Source: Trichosphaerium sp. ATCC 40318 (Eukaryota; Protista; Tubulinea). From it: DNA of 64,000 nucleotides. The translations under genes and the position numbers were made by a program. Below the pieces are notes generated by a model, which saw only the letters and a program-made list of their open reading frames with translations, was not told where the DNA came from and made no database searches. Position 1 is the first letter of the stretch, and each line of letters opens with the position of its first letter. Where the stretch lies: NCBI GenBank assembly GCA_038496445.1, contig JALMLS010000371.1, forward strand, positions 9,456 to 73,455. Direction: 5' to 3'. This document shows positions 51,867 through 64,000 of the stretch, piece after piece.

Positions 51867-54800
51867 TTAGTGAGGCTCAGAATGAGCAGCATTTAGTTGC
51901 TTTGCAAACGATTTTCCTCTGTATCCTCTTATAATGGTCCTACCATTCGCATTTCCACCGGTGTATCTGTACTGTATACCTGTTCCGTCCTTGTTTAACA
52001 GAACATAACGAACTCCATCTCCTGTAGGTATCTTCTCCCCAAAGCGCTTATTCTGGTATCCATTCTCAAGAATAGTAGTAGATTTCGCTGCATAAGGTTG
52101 GTAAGAACCGTTATCTTCAAGCCAAAACCATGAACCACGTGCTACGACAAAAAATAAGCAAAAGACTTCAAAAACCATTTCCTCGTTTTTTAAATAGAAA
52201 GTGTTTTTTACCTATTTGTCTTGTGAACCCTGTACTCTTCCTCTGTTGTGTCATTGTCTTTAAATTTGCAGTATAACGTCCTCCAACAACCTATGTGAGA
52301 TTATTAAGAAGAAATTATACTTACAAAACGTACAGTGATAACTACTTTGCCTTCTTTGTATCCATCTTCCAACTAAGAAAAAATCAGTTACGACGAAAAA
52401 AAAGTTAACGAAGTTGTACCGCTTTGTTGTCAGCTGGTCCATACTCATTCCATTGGGAGTCATCCTTGTAGAACCAATGAGGTTCAGGAACGTTAATACC
52501 TCCTTGAGAAGCGGAACCTTCTTCTTCATCATCGTATTCCTCAGCGTTAAGGAACTCAATTTTAAAAGCTATTCTGTCCTTATGGATAGCATAACGATTG
52601 ACGTGCTGCATAATGAGCGCTTCGTAGCTACCAGTAGCAGCAAAGTACTGTAACGCAAGAGTAGAATCCAAAGGATCGTCAACGTCTGGGTTAAGAAGCA
52701 ATCCATAAACACAATTCAACACGGTAGTCATAGCAGTGTCGGCTGTCCAATTTCTATGAAAAAAAGTTAGATAAAAAAACGAGCGAATTTGCTTACCTTG
52801 TGAAAATAGAGTGACATATTTTACCTAAAAGTAGGAGGTTAGAGTAATCGCTCGTGTATATATTATCGCACCGTATTGGTTGACGTTACAATGACGTATT
52901 GGTGTAATGAACCTCATTTCAGGAGCAGACATTGGGTAGTCTTCAGGGAACTGACAGTACAACAAGTACGTTCCATTCTTATATGGTGATGCCTCTGGCG
53001 CTTCCATAATAACTCTCCAGAAACCAATATCCTCTTGACAAGGATATATATCGAAAGCAGGATGCTTCGCTAAAACAACACGTCAAAACATGATCCAAAA
53101 ACTGCAAAGCAAAAAAAAAAAAAAAGTGTTTTCTTGTTCTTACCTTTCATGAGTTTTGTCAACTCCTTCATTAATCGACGAATACGATTAGTCTCTACTG
53201 GCGCATCTTTCTCGGAAGCATTCTTTAAAGTAGTCTCAAGAGTTTGAACTGGTTTTTTCAAGTTCGTAGGTTGCTTCCTTGCAGGAACACGTGTGTCACT
53301 GCACTCATCGAGAGGGAATCTCCAGTTATTTCCGAATTTTAGTAAATCTCCTCTATTAGATACAAAATTCTTGATTGCCTCCTAAATAACAAGTGTAAGG
53401 CTTTCAGAAAAGGCAGTAAAATGAAAAAATTACCTGATCTGGTCTCTCATATGAAGTCAATAGAGTTTCAAGCTCATTCAACCTAAGAGCTTGTTTTAAG
53501 TTCTCAGGAGCAAAAGCGTAACCGTTACTCGCTTTAGCTATTGCACGCAACTATAAAATTCTGTAAGCTCTTTTATTTTGAAGTGGAAGGCAAACTGAAA
53601 TGTGGAGAAAAAAAAGTCAAAACAATTTGCGTACCTTGACGTTTTTAGCGCCTTCACCAATCATAATCGCATCCAAAGTAATACGGTTGACCTAAGCAAT
53701 AGCATGTCAATCAAGAAATTTACAGCTAAAAGTGTACCTGTAAGTATTGCGCAACCTTCCATGGAATAGATGAAGACTTTGTGTCTTCACCATCAGTAAG
53801 ACACATAACACGTAACCTAGCGTTCTTGTGCTTTTTCTTATATGCAACAAGCTCTTCTCCAGCTTTTTGAATAGCATCCCAAAGCTTGGTTTCACCCTCA
53901 GCATCAGCGGAATCAACTTGATCTCTGAATATTTCGTATCTATTCGGCGAAGGAAAAAAGTCAACAAACATCTTTTGCGATGTAATTTGGTTGGGAAAAA
54001 AAAAAGTGTAATTGCACGTACAGAGGTGTTAATTTACACGAGTAATCAACATCATTTCCAAAAAGAATTAATCCAATATGATTAGGGTAATCATAAGCTT
54101 GAGACCTGTTGATGAAGGCATGGAACAGTTGTTTTACAGTCTCCATACGTGTCAAGCGCGCCTCGTTCCTAAAAAATTAAATCAGCCCGCAAACCAGACA
54201 ACCTGTTGTCTAGTACTCATCGTGTGGTGCTTTCATCTCAATTACACCACCAAGAGGGTATCTACTGATTTTTTGGTTGTCATGGAAGAGAGTACCAGTG
54301 TACCATCCATCTCCAATTTTTCTAAGTAAGGGTAAGTTCAAGTGCATGTAGGCACTGTGTACCTCATATTGGTCCATAGTGAAAACGATTTTGGTTGGAT
54401 GAGACCGAGTTTGTGCCAAATTAGTAACTTCAATTCGTATGTCTTAAAAACAACTAGAGTTAGCTTAACAACCACACTAAGTCACGTACGGTTAAGCTTG
54501 TTGATACTGTGACATCAAACATTGTACCATGCATGCTCTTAATCTTGAGTTTCTTTTTGGATTGGCTGAAGCCACCAAAGCTCATGAGATGGTGAATGGT
54601 TGCGTTCCTTGAGATATTATAATCCGTCAATACATTTTCGTCAATCATTTGACGACCAGCGTATATTAAACGCATAGGCATATTAGGCATTGAGCTCATT
54701 TTTTTGTTTACCAAAGATTTCAGCTACGCGTTCTTTAGTATTTCTCATTTATTTTGAGATTGGCTACGTACCTGTGCAACTGTCCAACTCAAATCTACTT

Positions 54801-57732
54801 CAACAGTTATTGTTTTACCTGTTAGGGTTCTTATGAAGATTTGAATAGGATTTTCTGGTACAAGATCTTCTCCAGCGTCTTCTTGTTCTTCCTCTTCATC
54901 TACAAAACGAATAAGCTACACGTTATTTGTGACGTGATGATACTTACCATCTTCTTGAAGGAATTTAATAGTTTTGGTTGGATCTTCTTTAATTATCTCT
55001 AACACACGCGTTCTATATGTTTTAACCAAGTGTGCAAGGAAAACAGAGCGAGAAGCGATTTCGCTTAATATTTTGCTAGAACTCCACTAATACGAACGTA
55101 AGCAACCCTATCACAATGTAACAAAGGGTAACGTACTTGGCGTTTAGCTATTATTCTCCAATGGTCAATGTATTCATGGCTTCTAAGACGAGCAATCTCA
55201 GTCTCGATCTCATCCTTAGCAAACGTTATACCAGAATCAACTTCATCTTGATCCCAAGCTTTTCCGTTCATTGAAGAGCTGATATCAAGGCACACAAGAA
55301 TAGCTTCCTTTACTTCACGGTCATCAATAAATTCCATATCATCAACATTAGAGTTCGTTAGCTTCTAAAGAAACCAGCTTAACAAGATTCAAAAAAAACT
55401 AGCGATATCATACCTTGGCGATCATATTAGCATTTGCGCCAGTGCTGTCTCCAGTCTCAGGATCGAAAAGAAGGATTGTACCAACACTGCACGGCTCAGG
55501 GCCAGTGTAGACCTGAAAAAAACTGTTAATGTAAAAAGCTCGAGACCTGTCTACTCACGTTCACATAGCCTTCCTTGTTTCGTGACAAACAAGGTGGCCT
55601 CGCACGTTTAAGTGATAGAGGAGGTATTATACGCATGGTTGTGACCTCTTTGTTTACACGACGCTGTAATTTTCCCCAATCGTACTGAAGACCGGTAGGA
55701 ATGTCTTCGTCCATGTCATCTTTATCATCGCCCTCTTTTTCCTCTGAATTAAAGCATAAGTCAGGTTATGATTCAGTTAATCAAAAAACAGATTCCATAC
55801 CAACTTCAGGAGGAGATAAAACAAAAATATCATCGCCAAGAGGATGGCATAGTAGTAATGTGCAGTAGTATGTGTCAGGAATAAGATCTTCTTTCGCGAG
55901 TTTGGAATAAGGAGACCTGAAAAAAATCGTCAGAAAAAAAAAGGGTATCGAAAAAAAATTACTAACCCGCTTATGAACATGCTACCACCTTCCATACGTT
56001 CTAGTAAACTTGGTCTATTGTACAACTTGTTTTTAGTTGATTCCTTAATTCGGACAGGATCTGTCATTCTGGCGTAGGTTATGCTATCAGCAAGAGACAC
56101 TAGTACCCAAATTTCAGCAAGGAAAAAAATTATACTCCACTTTTACCTTGCGTAAATTTACTGCATCTCTTCTTGTCATTTGACTCAGCGTAAGTGTCAA
56201 AGAAACCCCAAAGTGTAGCACTTCTTTCAAAGAGTTTTTCATCAGAAACTAAATGCGAGTGTAAGTAGAAACATAAAAAAGAGAAAGGAAGGAACTAACA
56301 AATAGGAACTAGAATTGAAAATAGAGTAAAAAACAAAAATAGAAACGAAGCCACGTGCTCTTGGATGGAACTAATTTTCTTGCAAAATTATAAAAAGCAG
56401 AAGCAAGGGCAGCCTTTTGCTCAGCGTATAGCTTTTTCTTTTGGATGAGATACCTAGGAAATAGACGTTAAAACAAACGGAAAAAGTAGCAACTTTTTTT
56501 TTTTATATTCACTTACTTTAAGGCAAGGATGGCTGGAGGGAACTGAATTCTCCTAGCAAAGTGGCCCAAAAACGATTTTGCACCATCAAGATGAGCTGTA
56601 AGTACATAGAGAGAAGATAGGAAACAAATCATTCCAGATTTTGATTGCTCAACAAGAGCTGGTTGCCAAGCTACATCAGCTTGGAATCTATGACCTTGAG
56701 GAGTTTGTACATGTCTGAAATTATCCGCGCTCTCGCCAGTGTATCTAAAACGAAGTATAAGCCCAAAACAAGTAAGCTTGTGGTCTTTTTACCGTACCTT
56801 CGGAAAGATACAAAAAGTATACTTGGGTCATCCCAAGGAGCAGCTGGGTTTAATTCTTCCTTGCTTTGAAGCAAACGCGCAAATCCGAACTGACCCAAAG
56901 TCATCTGTTCAGTTTTATCGGTTACAAGTATAGGATGTGCAGCGAGGTGCAAGTCAACAACTAAATCAGTTCCCTTTCGTAAAAAAGTGAGTACAAAAAA
57001 AGACTACTGTTCGCGTGTACTTCGAATCTAGCCTGTTCAGCTGTTTGGATTGCATCTTTCAGAGCTCGTAGTGTATGGCCCAAGGTTACAGTTATCTCTT
57101 GGACAGTCTCATGGTATGAACAACGATATTTGATGGTAATGGGTTCGTTGGATGGCTGGGAAGCAAGAATTTGCAATTCTGTGAAAAGGTTAATGATAAA
57201 TTGCTCCAATGGTGATGTTGTAATGTTGTTTGTACCTGGTTCTAGTTCGGGCGCGTTTGGGTCAACTTCACATGAGGTCTGTTCCTCTTTTTTAGGCTCT
57301 GCGGTTGCGCCTGGTGTGATTAGTTTCCGTTTTGACGTAACAGAAATGTAAGTTGGTTTGTTTTATTTGTACCTTCGTCGAAAACTGCTACAACCTCGTC
57401 AGCCTCCATAATAGCGTCTTCCAAGATATCTTCGTTGAAAAGAAAGGCGTCATCAGCTTTTAACTTCAGTTCTGTAATTTTCACGTTTAATCCGGCGTCT
57501 GTAGCAAGTCTACGCGCCACGTAAACGGTTGAGTTCAAAGAAATTTTTGCTTTTTTTTTGGTTACTGACAGCGTTCACGTACTTTTGAATGGAGGTCTCC
57601 AAATCTCCAATGGTTGACTCAGGAGACAAATCACACGAAAATTTTGACGACCCAACCTAGAAAAGTTACAAACTTGTATTTACACGCGTATTTCAATACC
57701 TCGACTGTGTAAGTAGTTGTTGTGTTGGCCAT
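51867..57732 (-). CDS. Giant Ubl / vWA (split by Ubl insert) / E2 UBC / WWE-WWE protein, multi-exon
   Basis: IQIFIRTLTGKTITVEV...RLIYAGRQM (Ubl); VCLDISSSM and CLTDGED (vWA MIDAS); SPYKNGTY...FPEDYPMSAPEMRFITPIRHCNVN...KICHSIF (UBC); WFYKDDSQWNEY and WFWLEDNGSYQPY (WWE). Confidence 0.88.
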
Positions 57733-57902
57733 GGTATTCTGCGTGCCGTTTAGACAGATTTACGCTTGGAAACCAACTTAAACATAGCTCTTAAGGCATT
57801 AACGCACGTAAACAATGAACAGCTATTTGCTAGAGCGACCACAAGAAGGTTGAATTCAATTGTACGTCAAATCGCGCAACATAAACAAAACCAGCCTGTC
57901 AA
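57733..57902. promoter_or_regulatory. Putative bidirectional promoter (~170 bp between divergent ATGs)
   Basis: ATG at 57732 (-) and 57903 (+), each followed by a short exon and a GT donor; promoter function inferred. Confidence 0.55.
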
Positions 57903-60900
57903 ATGACAGAAGCTTCTAACGGTACGCTTGTTAACAATACCACCGCCTATAACGTTCAAACGGCACGTTAAATGAGTTGGTGTCGGCCAAACTACAAATG
58001 GCGTTTCGACGAGAATCATATCCTATCTAGAGACTTACCACAGCACTTTAGGTGACCCGTTGGAGTACAAGATTGTTTGCGTAGGCCAAACATTTTTAAA
58101 AACGTCATTGGTCAGCTCTTTCGTAACGGAGACGCAACAAGTACAGGTCAGCCGCGTCGTTTCGTTTCAAAACAAAAATATTATTTCGGCGCTTTTTTTC
58201 AAAAAAACTAACTTGACGAGCAGTATGACCCTATAATAGAAGAAAACTATACCAAATCTATAAAAGTAGATGATAAACTTTGTAATTTGATAATAACGGA
58301 CACAGCCGAACAGGTATGAACCAAGTTTTTTAGTGTAAAACAAGAAAAGTTATTTTTGGAACAACCCTTTTTTTCTTTTTTTATGTTCAGCTAATTCTGA
58401 CTTTTCTTTCATTTCAGGATGAATTCTCGTACGTCTGAGTATCTTTTATATCTTTAATATGAAAGATTATGATATATTTCTTACTCACAGCGAAAGGTCA
58501 ATGCGAGAAATGTGGTTTAAGAACGGTGAAGGTTTTATTTTTTTCTACAATGTGAGGTCAAGGACAAGCCTTGAAGGACTTAAGTTTCAGTTGAACATGA
58601 TGTTTAATTGTAAAGACAGTAGGGATATACCAGTTGTACGTTATAACGCTTACGTGACCTACAAGTGTTTTTATTTCTCTTGAACAACACGCCGTAAAAA
58701 CCCGATATTTTATTAATTTAATTAGACTCTTTCGTTGATTTTTACGTAGGTCATTGTCGGTTGCTGTTACTCTCGTAGTGAAGTAGGCGACAGAGAAGTA
58801 TCAAAGCAAGAAGGTAAAGCATTTGCTGCAGGTGTTTGCGATAGAGGTATTCCGTATTTTGAGGCTGACGGCGACACTTGGGTACTTTTTTCTTTCGAAT
58901 ATTATTCATTTTGTTCACTTCTTTTGATCTTTAGACTAATGTGGAAGAACCTTTCGAGGCTATTGTCAAACAAATAAACTCTATAAGAAGTCAACCAACG
59001 ATAAAGAAGATAGAGAACCCAAAACTACGGTTAAAGATATCAAAGAGAAATCTTCTGAGGATGGAAATCACAGACAAAGCTCAGAAACAAGGGCTGAAGC
59101 GTCTTCCAAAACCACTGATTCCTTACGAAAACAGCGTGGCTCATCGTATTTTGAAGCACTTGCGAGGACGTACGTGTGACCTTCCAAAATATCGTTGCGA
59201 ACTGACAATTGTTTTCTGTAGCGTTGGCGGAAGAAACGTCGTTGCCGCCAAAGGTCAACGAAAAGATAATGACAGATGCTATGGCTCAGGTGTTTGTATT
59301 CACAGACAAGCCTACCAAGATTGCTGACCTGTGTTATCATGCTGAGAGCGAGTTCAAGAGCCTTAGGTTTCCATTCGGAAACAATAACAATCGGCCTCAG
59401 AGTCATGTTCGTGTTATAAATTTGAACTCTGGAACAGCAAAGTTTCAATATTCTAAAGCTGATGTTGTCATTCTTCATATATCATCTGTAGAGTATCAGT
59501 GGGTATATGGTTATGTACAACATACGTTTTCATCGTCCTCTCCAATATTTATTATGCTACGGGAACCTAATAGCAAGATTCCTATTTTACAAGGTAAGCC
59601 AAAAGATATTTTTCAGTTCTGAAGCCCATTCTTTATTTAGAGATATCTATGGCGCGTTGGTTGTCTGGCCATATTATCGATTGGCCTAATAAGTCAATAA
59701 AGTCTGTGAGAACTCAGATAATAGGCGTTATTCTGTATGAATCCAATTTGAAGCACGAGGCAGACTTCCTTGATTATTACAGAAATTGGGTTGAATCTAA
59801 ACCGAAATTATATCCTCCATTGACTACAACAAGGCATCATACGCTCAAATTACTTGGTACTACACTTCTAGATGTTTTTTTTTAAGTCTACAGTGATAAA
59901 TGGCTGACATGAATCATTTTAGTTCTTGGTCATGGCGGTTGCGGTAAAACCTCACTCATCAACTTTTTGAAAAAAAAAAAGAATACAATTACACAGTCTA
60001 CTATTGGTTTTGATAGTAGTTTTCTAAGGTAAACGTTGTTTTGACTTTTTGATGAACTAAATCTGTTCTTTGCCTGTCTGCATGTTCGGTTAGATTAATG
60101 GTTTGTTGTAGCATACGATCCAATAAATTCACTGTTTATGACTTTGCTGGACAGCTTGAGTATTTATCTGTCCATAAGCACTTTATATCCGCAGAGTACT
60201 CAATCTACATCATAGTGGTACGCATAGAAACTCTAGCATCTATTGTCACGTGCTTGATCAAGAGTGGATCGCATTTTTATCCAAAATCTGTTTTGTTCAT
60301 CATTTTCTCTCTTCGCCAACTCATGGTATTCTTAGTTCGATTCATCACAACAATTTGAGGTTGCTATGAAACAAATTAAGCATTGGCTTGCTTTACTACG
60401 TGGTAAACTACCTAGCACAACACTCAATGCTATTTTTTTTGTTGGAACAAAGATAGACGAAGTCAATAATCGTAATACAATCGATACCCTCCGCACTGAT
60501 CTAAAAGCATTCTTGAGTCAGGAAACAGAATTTACAAACCATACAATTTCGTTCGTCTCTTCAATAACTGGTACTGCGCTTCACCTTTTGGTAACGTCCT
60601 TGATTAACATGCTGTAGGTGAGGGAGTTACACAAATGAAGGGACACATAGCTGAAGTGTATAAAAGTATGAAGCCATTTCCGAAGGTATGTAAAAATGTT
60701 ATTTTTTTGGAATGGAAAAAACTGAAAATCACTCACTCCTCAACTAGGTTGCAAATTTATGTCAAGTCATTGCAGATACTGCTTCACAAGGAAATCATTG
60801 TAGAGTATTTACGAGTGTGTACGTGTTTGGCAAGACCGGTTGTAGTTCGCCTCAGCGTCTTGTTGTTTTGATTGCTTTTCTAAGTTCTCTTTTTAGCTCC

Positions 60901-63900
60901 GACTTTAAAGACATCTGCAAGAAAGAGTTCAAAAAGAGCCATACTGATTGGAACAGGTTAACTAAACTTGAGTTTGCGACATACCTTGAGTACTTGCATA
61001 ACACTGGAGTGCTAATGCTAGATACTGTACGGATTAACTGTTTTGTTTTTGGTTCATCCCTCCTTCTCATTTTTTTGGTTTTAGACGACTGCTATAATTT
61101 GTACAAAGCCAGCTATCATGTCTAAAATCTTGAGCAGTTTTATTGGACCTGATACACATATCAATCGACTTCAGGAGCAGAAAGGAGGCTGTGGTGGTAT
61201 GAGGAATCCAATAGTATCTTTAGAGGATGCTGTAAAACGTTTGCAACGTGTTCCTACTACTGATGGAGAACCATACAGCCGGCTCATTTGCTTATCGATT
61301 CTCAACTTTATGGAGCAGCTCAAGATCTGTTATATGCTGTCACCGCAAGAGGAGGTACGCTTGAAGTGATAAGAGTGGAATCGTGTACTTATTGATCGAT
61401 AGATATGTTACGGAAGACCTGGATACATGTTTCCAATGCTCCGACCAAAAGCTGAAATGGCCTATCTACCTCCTGTAGTAGGTGATCGTGAGGGGTTACG
61501 TCTTTGGACGGCTAGACTTAAGTCCAGCGAAGATGTTAGTATTACCAGCGATTTTTTTAACTCGATGCAAGTTGAACTGAGAGGTAAGCAAAAGGATTGA
61601 AAGCGTTTTTTGCAGAGATTTACTTTTTTTCCTCGCAGATTTTCACGACTTCAAGTACAAGCTTTTCTTGAACTCTATGGTCCTCGCAGATAAACAAGGT
61701 AATATGGTGTTATTATACCACTCAGTAGATTCCATCATTATGATGGTGCGGGGTACTGATCCAACAACTTGGGTACTTCCTATTTTTCTCATTTTCGTAC
61801 TCTTTTTTATTGTTCTTTTTTATTCTTAACTTTGGTTTTGTTTTAGCTTTCTACGCTATATGCATTTATTCCTCAATTGAAGAGAGCATCTTTTGATGTA
61901 CTTTGTCCTTCGTGTACGGTATCAGGGACGTTCCAGTCATTCGATAGAAGCCATGTTTGTAAATCTTCTACAACAACGCTTACAGAACAGACTGTTGATC
62001 AAGGTGTTCCTATTGAAACTCTTGAAGGAGTTGTACCTAAATTATGGAGTCCAAAAGGAGGTATTACATTGTTTTCTTTTCAAACAGACTGTAGTTTAAG
62101 TCATTAATGTCATTTCAATTAAGGCGTCTCTTTCTTTGAAAAAGGAGTATGGCAACAACAGCCTCAGTTGAAGTATACTGTTCTAGAGCAGTGTGAAGCT
62201 ATAAAAGAGAGAAAAAGCGAGTACCTACGTGCTCGAGATATGTTCTACCAGTTTGTTGGTGTTGACAATGCATCATTCTTTAAGCTTGATAAGGTTGTGT
62301 TCTTTCACAATCCTATGCTTGAAAATAAGTTTCATGCTTTTTATCAACGTGTTATATCACGTGTTGTTGACCAACATGATCCAAATGATATTGAGGATTC
62401 GACAGATGATGGTATGTACTAGCTAACAAGGTGTGACGATGCTAAGCAAAGTTTAGGTGCAAAGAAGGCTTGGAAACAATGGTTCTTAGACAACTTTCTA
62501 ACAACGCCATATTCAAATTTTTTTTATTTAGGATACTTGAAAAGTTAGATAGTTACGCTATGCGTGGGTCTGGGAATGAACAAGTGAATTTATTGCCAGG
62601 GTGCGTACCTTTTTCGGTCTTTTTGACTTTTTTTCTTAGTTTTTTCTTTGTGTAGGTTTCATGGCACCACAGAGGTATTTTTACGCATATTCTAAGTCTA
62701 AGAAGGCTTTACTAATAAAGAGGTTATAGGAATCATCGTTTAAAATCGCTGAGAATAATTTTTTGGAGCCTCGAGAGCTCAATAATCAGACAGATCCTGG
62801 TTATTTTGGTACTTATTAATTGGCAGAATGTCAAACATGTCACTGATAGTCTTTGGTAGGTAAAGGCATATACTTTACGCAATCGCCAACGTATGGTATG
62901 GTTATATTCTTTCAAGTTATTCTAAGCCCTAAATCACGTGTAGGATCCAAATACGCTGAACTAAAGCAAAAGACAGGTCAACACTGTCTCCTCATATCTG
63001 TACGACGACTTTTATCGAAAAACAAAAAAAGACACCCTCCCTCCCTTTCTTAGCTAATGCTGTTCTTTAGTGGTTGATTATGGGTAAACCGTATCCTGTC
63101 ATTGAGACACCGGATCCTAATGATCCAAATACGTTACTTGGAAAGCCATGCAAGGCTGGCTATGACTCTCATTATGTTGTTGTTAAAAAGGCTGGTAATG
63201 ATATGATGTATATGCCATGTCGTCCTGCTGAAGAACCTGACGCAGATGAAGTTGTAGTATTCAACAAAGACCAAGTAAGAAATAGTTAAACGCACACCTT
63301 CTTGGAATTAATGGCTATTTAGATACTGCCGCGATACTTGGTGTACTACACTAGGAGTGGCACCAATACGTTTGATACATTCGAACTTAGCTGGCGAGAT
63401 TGTAGAAACTTGGTTTTGTGGGTACGTACAGCAAGAAGAGATGGTCTTGATCGAATACTGGCCACACTTTTTGCCACGACTTTGTGTTGAACTGCTTTTT
63501 TAGGTGGATGATAATCTAGCTGATGAGAATAAGTTCACTGTAAAAATGTTGGAGAAGGATCCTAAAGCGAGTGTCAAGGTGAGCCCTGATATGAACATAA
63601 GTTGATTAGTAATGTATTTGTATGTAGGTCATACCCATGACGTCAATCACGGAATTGATAGCATTTTTGAAGCAGTATGCTGCCAGTAATATTAAAAAAA
63701 TAAAGGTCATTACAAATCAGTACAGAGCGAATGATGGAAAGCAAGATGCTGCCAATAATCTTGTCAAGTACGTTTACCCATCAATTTTTATATGCGTTCT
63801 TGATTCAAAAAAAGCGCACAAAGAGCTGGTTGCTTATTTTCCGTTTTTTAGAGTTGTCAGGGAGAAAAAGAAGTGGAAGAAAATTCCAATATTGATATAC

Positions 63901-63999
63901 GGCAACAATGTTGACAGCGCTGGTTTTCTTGTCAAGAAATATTCAAAGGTTAAGGCCACTACTAAAGCAGTTGACTTGCTTCACTTTTGTTCAAAGTAA
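57903..63999 (+). CDS. Pseudo-Ras + Roc-COR + PARP-like ADP-ribosyltransferase + receiver-like domain protein, multi-exon
   Basis: EYKIVCVG, YDPIIEENY, DTAEQ (Ras-like); VLGHGGCGKTS, STIGFD, YDFAGQLEY, VGTKID (Roc); FHGTTE, DPGYFGKGIYFT, GYDSHY, DEVVVFNKDQILPRYLVYY (ART); LVLWVDD (REC); TAA at 63997-63999. Confidence 0.85.
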
Positions 64000-64000
64000 T

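Follow-up and report, generated by a model that had tools for sequence, protein, structure and literature searches.

A Roco-type gene of Trichosphaerium with a PARP-type ADP-ribosyltransferase domain in the place of a kinase

Roco proteins have been studied mostly for LRRK2, and how their Roc-COR module controls the enzyme attached to it is still debated. A locus of Trichosphaerium sp. ATCC 40318, lying at the very end of contig JALMLS010000371.1, raises the question of what such a module might control when it is followed by something other than a protein kinase, and whether the two parts in fact belong to one protein. We analyzed 64,000 nucleotides (nt) of this contig (C234:9456-73455 in our numbering), which are called the window below and supply all coordinates given without a contig name; the contig stops at the last window base, one base past the stop codon of the gene in question. 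An earlier note on the same DNA had proposed, for positions 59840-63350, a Roco protein in which a PARP-type ADP-ribosyltransferase (ART) replaces the kinase.

The answer that we favor, with a probability of roughly four in five, is that the plus strand carries one intact, spliced and selectively maintained gene for a Ras-like/middle/Roc/COR/ART/receiver-like protein, in which a Roc-COR switch would gate the ART. We demonstrate the architecture and the integrity of this gene, the PARP-type identity of its ART and the conservation of the catalytic triad; the gating is our proposal. Reading the three forward frames and joining open stretches via introns yielded a single intact gene of 31 exons at 57903-63999, so that the range given in the earlier note was too small. 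A codon-by-codon walk of the exon coordinates, from the ATG at 57903 to the TAA at 63997-63999, gives a coding sequence of 4065 nt (about 1354 amino acids [aa]) with no internal stop, and all 30 introns are of the GT-AG type, with lengths of 45 to 118 nt (mean, 68 nt). Once spliced, every motif named in that note falls in one reading frame, namely, GHGGCGKT, DFAGQ and TKID of Roc, followed by CPSC, FHGTTE, GKGIYF and DEVVVF. The domain order was confirmed as a degenerate Ras-like domain, an unassigned middle region, Roc, a divergent COR, a CPSC-containing linker, a PARP-type ART with an H-Y-E triad, and a receiver-like domain (REC), encoded as follows.

57903-57921, plus strand: first exon (19 nt) with the ATG start and a GTACGC donor, its phase fitting the next exon; tentative
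58031-58140, 58221-58313, 58418-58428, 58491-58635 and 58750-58881, plus strand: degenerate Ras-like domain in five exons, from weak Pfam Ras matches
58935-59169, 59222-59593 and 59641-59856, plus strand: end of the Ras-like domain and middle region, fold unassigned
59923-60028, 60112-60217, 60336-60570 and 60618-60685, plus strand: Roc GTPase in four exons, from G motifs, Pfam Roc and tblastn
60748-60818, 60897-61026, 61085-61354, 61403-61583 and 61639-61772, plus strand: divergent COR in five exons, from a profile of relatives
61847-62060, plus strand: fast-evolving linker exon of 71 aa with CPSC, its matches in the genome being confined to three near-identical copies
62145-62411, 62457-62481, 62532-62600, 62656-62674, 62730-62808, 62860-62895, 62944-62999, 63071-63274 and 63323-63421, plus strand: ART in nine exons, from the family profile and collinearity with the relative P0001
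62656-62674, plus strand: micro-exon of 19 nt with the catalytic His (FHGTTE), AG/GT flanks and fitting phase; family-profile positions 52-57, equivalent to WHGS of PARP2
62860-62895, plus strand: exon with the catalytic Tyr (GKGIYF); profile positions 85-95, aligning with FGKGIYF of PARP2
63071-63274, plus strand: exon with the catalytic Glu (DEVVVF), the largest of the ART, 109 bits to the family profile; the Glu is that of NEYIVY in PARP2
63410-63999 (end of 63323-63421, then 63504-63578, 63628-63767 and 63852-63999), plus strand: receiver (CheY)-like domain, from a profile and a homologue model

Throughout, homology and fold tests used single exons, or full-length database relatives, as proxies for the window protein. 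The largest ART exon (68 aa), searched against 1.84 billion representative proteins, retrieved 133 relatives at an E value below 0.001 (best identity, 58%), and most of the relatives scanned exceed the Pfam PARP cut-off (PF00644, 26.7 bits), with scores of 50.7 for P0008, 45.5 for P0024, 40.4 for P0019, 38.0 for P0001 and 35.2 for P0006. A phmmer search of PDB sequences with this exon gave nothing meaningful; a profile of 17 relatives run against PDB placed PARP2 at the top (E = 2.6e-9), ahead of PARP13, PARP12, PARP4, PARP1, PARP10 and the tankyrases. In that alignment the family motifs HG, GxGIYF and D-E-I-V coincide with WHGS, FGKGIYF and NEYIVY of PARP2, and profile positions 53, 88 and 174 correspond to its H, Y and E; FHGTTE, GKGIYF and DEVVVF of the window sit precisely there, which bears out the triad proposed earlier. 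Moreover, the ART exons fill successive, non-overlapping stretches of the family profile (29-50, 52-57, 59-83, 85-95, 98-116, 117-182 and 183-199).

A close relative provides both a check on splicing and a structural proxy. P0001, a transcript-derived Trichosphaerium protein of 302 aa with the ART-REC arrangement, aligns without gaps to the window translation from exon 62532 through the stop codon, across all of the junctions, and is 58% identical to it across the largest ART exon; its FHGTTQ falls opposite the 19-nt micro-exon, at the same junction. Its AlphaFold model (predicted local distance difference test [pLDDT] score, 88.6) superposes on PARP2, PARP4, PARP3 and PARP1, each with a Foldseek probability of 1.0, and thus predicts the ART fold that had been suggested for the window domain. 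The likeness to PARP1 that had been drawn holds for the triad and should not be extended further: polymer synthesis is not implied, and a helical regulatory domain such as that of PARP1-3 was not found among the Pfam matches of the upstream exons or of the relatives, the ART being directly preceded by the COR and the 71-aa linker. Some H-Y-E PARPs attach single units only; the triad is compatible with chain synthesis and is no proof of it.

Full-length relatives indicate that Roc and ART belong to one polypeptide:

P0006: Roc, weak COR-B and PARP on an uninterrupted 2.9-kb metagenome contig
P0045 and two isoforms: ankyrin, Roc and PARP in Clydonella Trinity transcripts
P0062: Roc, COR-A and COR-B, with PARP below threshold at 17.2 bits; metagenome, retrieved via the ART exon
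P0111: Roc, with PARP just below the cut-off at 21.2 bits; gene model of Mastigamoeba balamuthi, named hypothetical

By tblastn, all four align collinearly with the window, beginning at Roc and ending at the C terminus, and the alignment of P0111 spans the linker region (61862-62368). The single open frame, together with these relatives that combine Roc (and, in some, COR) with PARP, upholds the central proposition that a PARP-type ART takes the kinase's place in a Roco protein.

The Roc domain retains intact motifs, with G1 (GHGGCGKT) in exon 59923-60028, G3 (DFAGQ) in 60112-60217 and G4 (TKID) in 60336-60570. Two of its exons match Pfam Roc at 17.4 and 18.9 bits (profile positions 5-35 and 55-85), each by itself under the 27-bit cut-off; P0006 reaches 61 bits with the same model. 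The Roc exons match the Roc domains of P0006, P0045 and P0111 by tblastn, and a Roc profile of the relatives places positions 5-30, 57-91 and 90-140 on three of them in order. The COR that follows is divergent: exons 60897-61772 match, in order, a profile built from the stretch between Roc and ART in P0006, P0045 and P0111. By hhalign (probability, 94.5%; E = 8e-8), this profile aligns with COR-A as verified by Pfam in P0062 and P0090, and P0006 also has a weak COR-B match (E = 0.009). An exon-wise Pfam scan at E values up to 1 detected neither COR-A nor COR-B at the locus, and a COR-region profile of six relatives had no match among PDB sequences. As for the linker, the CPSC described earlier as a knuckle is indeed present in frame between COR and ART, but it amounts to a CxxC motif common to two distant relatives, P0111 and P0090, in which a CPxC likewise stands just after COR-B. 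We did not adopt a zinc-binding reading, the support for which ends at that shared CPxC.

The last ~125 residues, which the earlier note had missed, form a conserved domain, which follows the ART in at least 25 relatives as well. Its exons correspond to three stretches of the domain profile (8-29, 29-77 and 80-125). Residues 176-302 of P0001, modeled with 19 relatives, gave a five-stranded alternating beta-alpha fold (pLDDT, 90.6), whose top Foldseek matches are the receivers Rcp1, RcpA and CheY (TM score, 0.6 to 0.67; E values from 6e-5). In Pfam, none of 19 members of the domain matches PF00072 (Response_reg) or any other family. By motif reading, the phospho-acceptor Asp appears to be replaced by Asn (ITN at the end of strand 3).

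That the gene is maintained is seen from comparison with near-identical copies. Two contigs, C248 and C504, each hold a copy of the gene, about 97.5 to 98% identical, and these could be haplotype copies or the products of a very recent duplication. Alignment of the window gene with the 97.5% identical C248 copy shows no indels in 4065 exon nt and 17 in 2032 intron nt (chance of all falling in introns, P ~8e-9), with 44 substitutions in exons (1.1%) and 62 in introns (3.1%; Fisher P = 1e-7). Codon changes across the whole coding sequence number 32 synonymous and 9 non-synonymous; in the ART the figures are 5 and 1, and in the middle region (58935-59856), compared with the second copy, 19 and 5. 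From the pattern of indels and codon changes we conclude that the reading frame is under purifying selection in both copies, the ART part included. The copies (C248:1-8437 and C504; loci L021, L010 and L011) correspond to 55560-64000 of the window, and the C248 copy has an AATAAA about 80 nt past the stop codon.

The gene also belongs to a lineage-specific expansion within the ~70-Mb, intron-rich host genome, with at least 17 further loci encoding Roc-COR-ART-REC, in which the front module varies and the switch and the enzyme are constant. At ~20 loci, ART exons are preceded on their own strand by COR-like exons at a distance of ~2.1 kb, and 17 of the 18 paralogous loci that we fetched have Roc, COR, ART and REC in that order and with the same spacing. 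Across the 18, the triad Glu is present in all, the Tyr in 16 of the 16 in which it was read and the His in 16. Many paralogues have MORN repeats upstream, in the position where the window copy has its pseudo-Ras front instead. The nearest paralogue by the ART exon (L048, C47:184300-190600; 57% identity) has ART and REC, and the 5 kb upstream showed neither Roc nor COR. On the 1-Mb contig C3, at least 10 ART-exon matches between ~170 and 1005 kb, several with MORN repeats upstream, suggest that the family is concentrated in this region.

Beyond this genome, public metagenome and transcriptome data contain the same type of ART, whether accompanied by the receiver-like domain or not, joined to LRR, TPR, WD40, ankyrin plus SH3, and PDZ modules (P0049, P0076, P0106, P0099 and P0090), which suggests that the ART may be a widely shuffled effector module.

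Several points weigh against our proposal. No single ART exon of the window attains Pfam PARP, a six-frame PARP search of the genome missed the locus, and a corresponding search with the COR-A model alone found canonical Roco genes and neither this locus nor its paralogues. The division of the ART into nine exons explains why single exons fall short; nevertheless, because the window exons by themselves miss Pfam PARP and Pfam COR-A misses the locus, both assignments rest on relatives and profiles. The triad is not universal in the family: P0111 of Mastigamoeba has Arg for the His and Gln for the Glu, and in two paralogues the His is replaced by Ser or Asn. An internal promoter may yield a separate ART-REC product. 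Finally, the regulation of the ART by Roc-COR is proposed by analogy with kinase-bearing Roco proteins only. The two paralogues with a substituted His (L032, C186:33000-39500; L034, C111:106300-112500) keep Tyr and Glu and may be inactive or altered members.

A different reading takes the locus as two adjacent genes, one for Roc-COR and one for ART-REC, with the in-frame join through the linker an artefact of the model. The linker exon is poorly conserved and has no match in the paralogues, P0001 is an ART-REC transcript starting with Met just ahead of the ART core, and the C47 paralogue has ART-REC with neither Roc nor COR detected in the 5 kb before it. We nonetheless consider this highly improbable, as the frame is open and the phases fit through the linker, none of the intervening exons between COR and ART has an in-frame start with an upstream stop, the order and spacing recur in 17 paralogues, the alignment of P0111 crosses the linker, and Roc and PARP are united on one polypeptide in the full-length relatives, Trinity transcripts included.

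The ART could instead be a catalytically dead scaffold or an NAD+/ADP-ribose-binding module like PARP13, signaling by binding alone; the triad losses in P0111 and the two paralogues, together with the match of the family profile to the inactive ZAP/PARP13 domain, speak for this. It is an unlikely account of the window copy, which retains H, Y and E along with the flanking NAD+-site motifs, and it sits poorly with an invariant Glu and Tyr in the paralogues and with the 5-to-1 excess of synonymous changes in the ART. That the locus is a decaying pseudogene copy in a large, turning-over family might be suspected from the size of the family and from the contig ending one base after the stop codon. 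This we find scarcely credible for a gene in which 4065 nt are free of stops and frameshifts, every splice site is canonical, indels are confined to the introns and synonymous changes prevail. A single intact gene encoding a Roc-COR switch and an ART with a complete triad remains our preferred reading.

The details of the gene model deserve comment. Three micro-exons of 11 nt (58418-58428), 25 nt (62457-62481) and 19 nt (62656-62674) were recognized, and the donor begins with GTAC in 17 of the 30 introns, an unusual consensus that gene finders may mishandle. Splicing an exon 62145-62415 straight to 62532 was rejected in favor of the 25-nt micro-exon, which is preferred because relatives hold a matching WKQ-type stretch. 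An apparently long last exon was likewise rejected; it contains an 84-nt intron (63768-63851), precisely the stretch in which indels of the second copy would break the frame. Certainty is lowest for the first exon and the 11-nt exon.

The front of the protein holds a degenerate Ras-like domain. Pfam Ras gives weak matches on two exons, at consecutive profile positions (27-58 and 62-96), and by motif reading the P-loop, DxxG and NKxD of this Ras-like domain are all altered; the frame through its exons closes only if the 11-nt exon is counted in. The exons of the middle region (58935-59856) had no match in a Pfam scan, and one weak tblastn match links the region to the Roc part of P0006; possibly, it is a second degenerate G-like domain.

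Head-to-head with the gene, on the minus strand at 51870-57700, lies a neighbor with ubiquitin-like domains, an E2 core and two WWE domains, as judged from Pfam matches on single pieces of open reading frames; a vWA domain further upstream is possible. We saw no support for a functional link with this neighbor, as no WWE match adjoins any other paralogous locus. Because the other WWE matches of the genome lie away from the paralogues, the pairing is not conserved in the family.

How might such a protein work? By analogy with other Roco proteins, its Roc-COR tandem would be a switch that depends on nucleotide and probably dimerizes, and both nucleotide state and dimerization would gate the attached ART. 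The ART would then pass ADP-ribose from NAD+ to a target, either as single units or as chains, with the variable front module supplying the input and the receiver-like domain possibly serving as a regulatory or docking module. GTP- or dimerization-controlled ADP-ribosylation, as put forward in the earlier note, is thus a reasonable inference by analogy. If so, a natural family in which this switch is joined to another enzyme, one that is easy to assay, would allow the Roc-COR coupling to be tested independently.

Another question is the biological role of the family, which in amoeba-type protists has expanded greatly with the H-Y-E triad conserved. A variable front, a constant switch and enzyme, and many copies together resemble immune and conflict systems and make the family a candidate for a part in protist innate immunity. 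We tentatively raise the possibility, which we regard as distinctly less likely than not to be correct, that in this family the Amoebozoa have a counterpart to the NLR-type immune receptors, in which the front module would sense an invader or disturbance, Roc-COR would oligomerize, and the ART would provide a defense or cell death output by ADP-ribosylating host or invader targets or by using up NAD+. Were this true, a GTPase-based immune receptor of eukaryotes would have ADP-ribosylation as a primary effector.

Among known systems, the Roco family is divided into LRR-RocCOR, LRR-RocCOR-kinase and DAPK types (PMC6337361). The Roco kinases (LRRK2 and LRRK1, and GbpC, Roco2 and others of Dictyostelium) share with the window protein an intact Roc followed directly by COR and a catalytic domain on one polypeptide, with further interaction domains flanking this core of Roc, COR and output (PMC6337361). 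Unlike them, the window protein has a PARP-type ART and a receiver-like domain as its output and no protein kinase, no LRRs at the front, where a degenerate Ras-like domain stands (in paralogues, MORN repeats), and a COR too divergent for Pfam COR-A at the exon level. With the catalytic domains of PARPs, of which PARP2, PARP4, PARP3 and PARP1 are the closest, the family shares the ART fold, the H-Y-E triad and the HG, GxGxYF and E-x-hydrophobic motifs. It differs from the PARPs in the fusion to Roc-COR and a receiver-like domain, in the lack here of a helical regulatory domain, WGR, zinc fingers, macro and WWE domains, and in an identity of ~15 to 22% in structural alignments made with the P0001 model. 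Two surveys of the PARP family mention no GTPase fusion or partner (PMC2964712, PMC4245714), and the PARP field would thus gain a GTPase-linked architecture that they do not list.

Full-text literature searches found no published description of a fusion of Roco or Roc-COR with a PARP or ADP-ribosyl domain; judging by predicted domains, the Roc-COR-ART fusion is already present, albeit unnamed, in public sequence data. In brown algae, ROCO proteins are candidate immune receptors, and molluscs have TIR-ROCO proteins; both are likewise lineage-specific, kinase-less eukaryotic Roco expansions with variable sensor or adaptor modules. They carry LRR or TPR repeats or TIR or Death-type adaptors, and the parts of these reports that we drew upon do not mention an enzymatic ART output (PMC11378527, PMC3341825, PMC9334734).

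The nearest concept to the Roc-COR-ART family is found in the bacterial AP-GTPase (Roc)-COR conflict systems, for which at least 24 exchangeable C-terminal effectors have been described (Kaur et al. 2021, PMC8195603). Those systems are prokaryotic, and the effectors named for them are TIR, DRHyd, caspase, trypsin, FGS and GT4 domains, with a PARP-type ART not named among them (PMC8195603), whereas the window gene is eukaryotic and intron-rich and has an effector of the eukaryotic PARP type. The general plan is nonetheless the same in both, with variable sensor repeats, a Roc-COR switch, an exchangeable effector and many paralogues per genome (PMC8195603).

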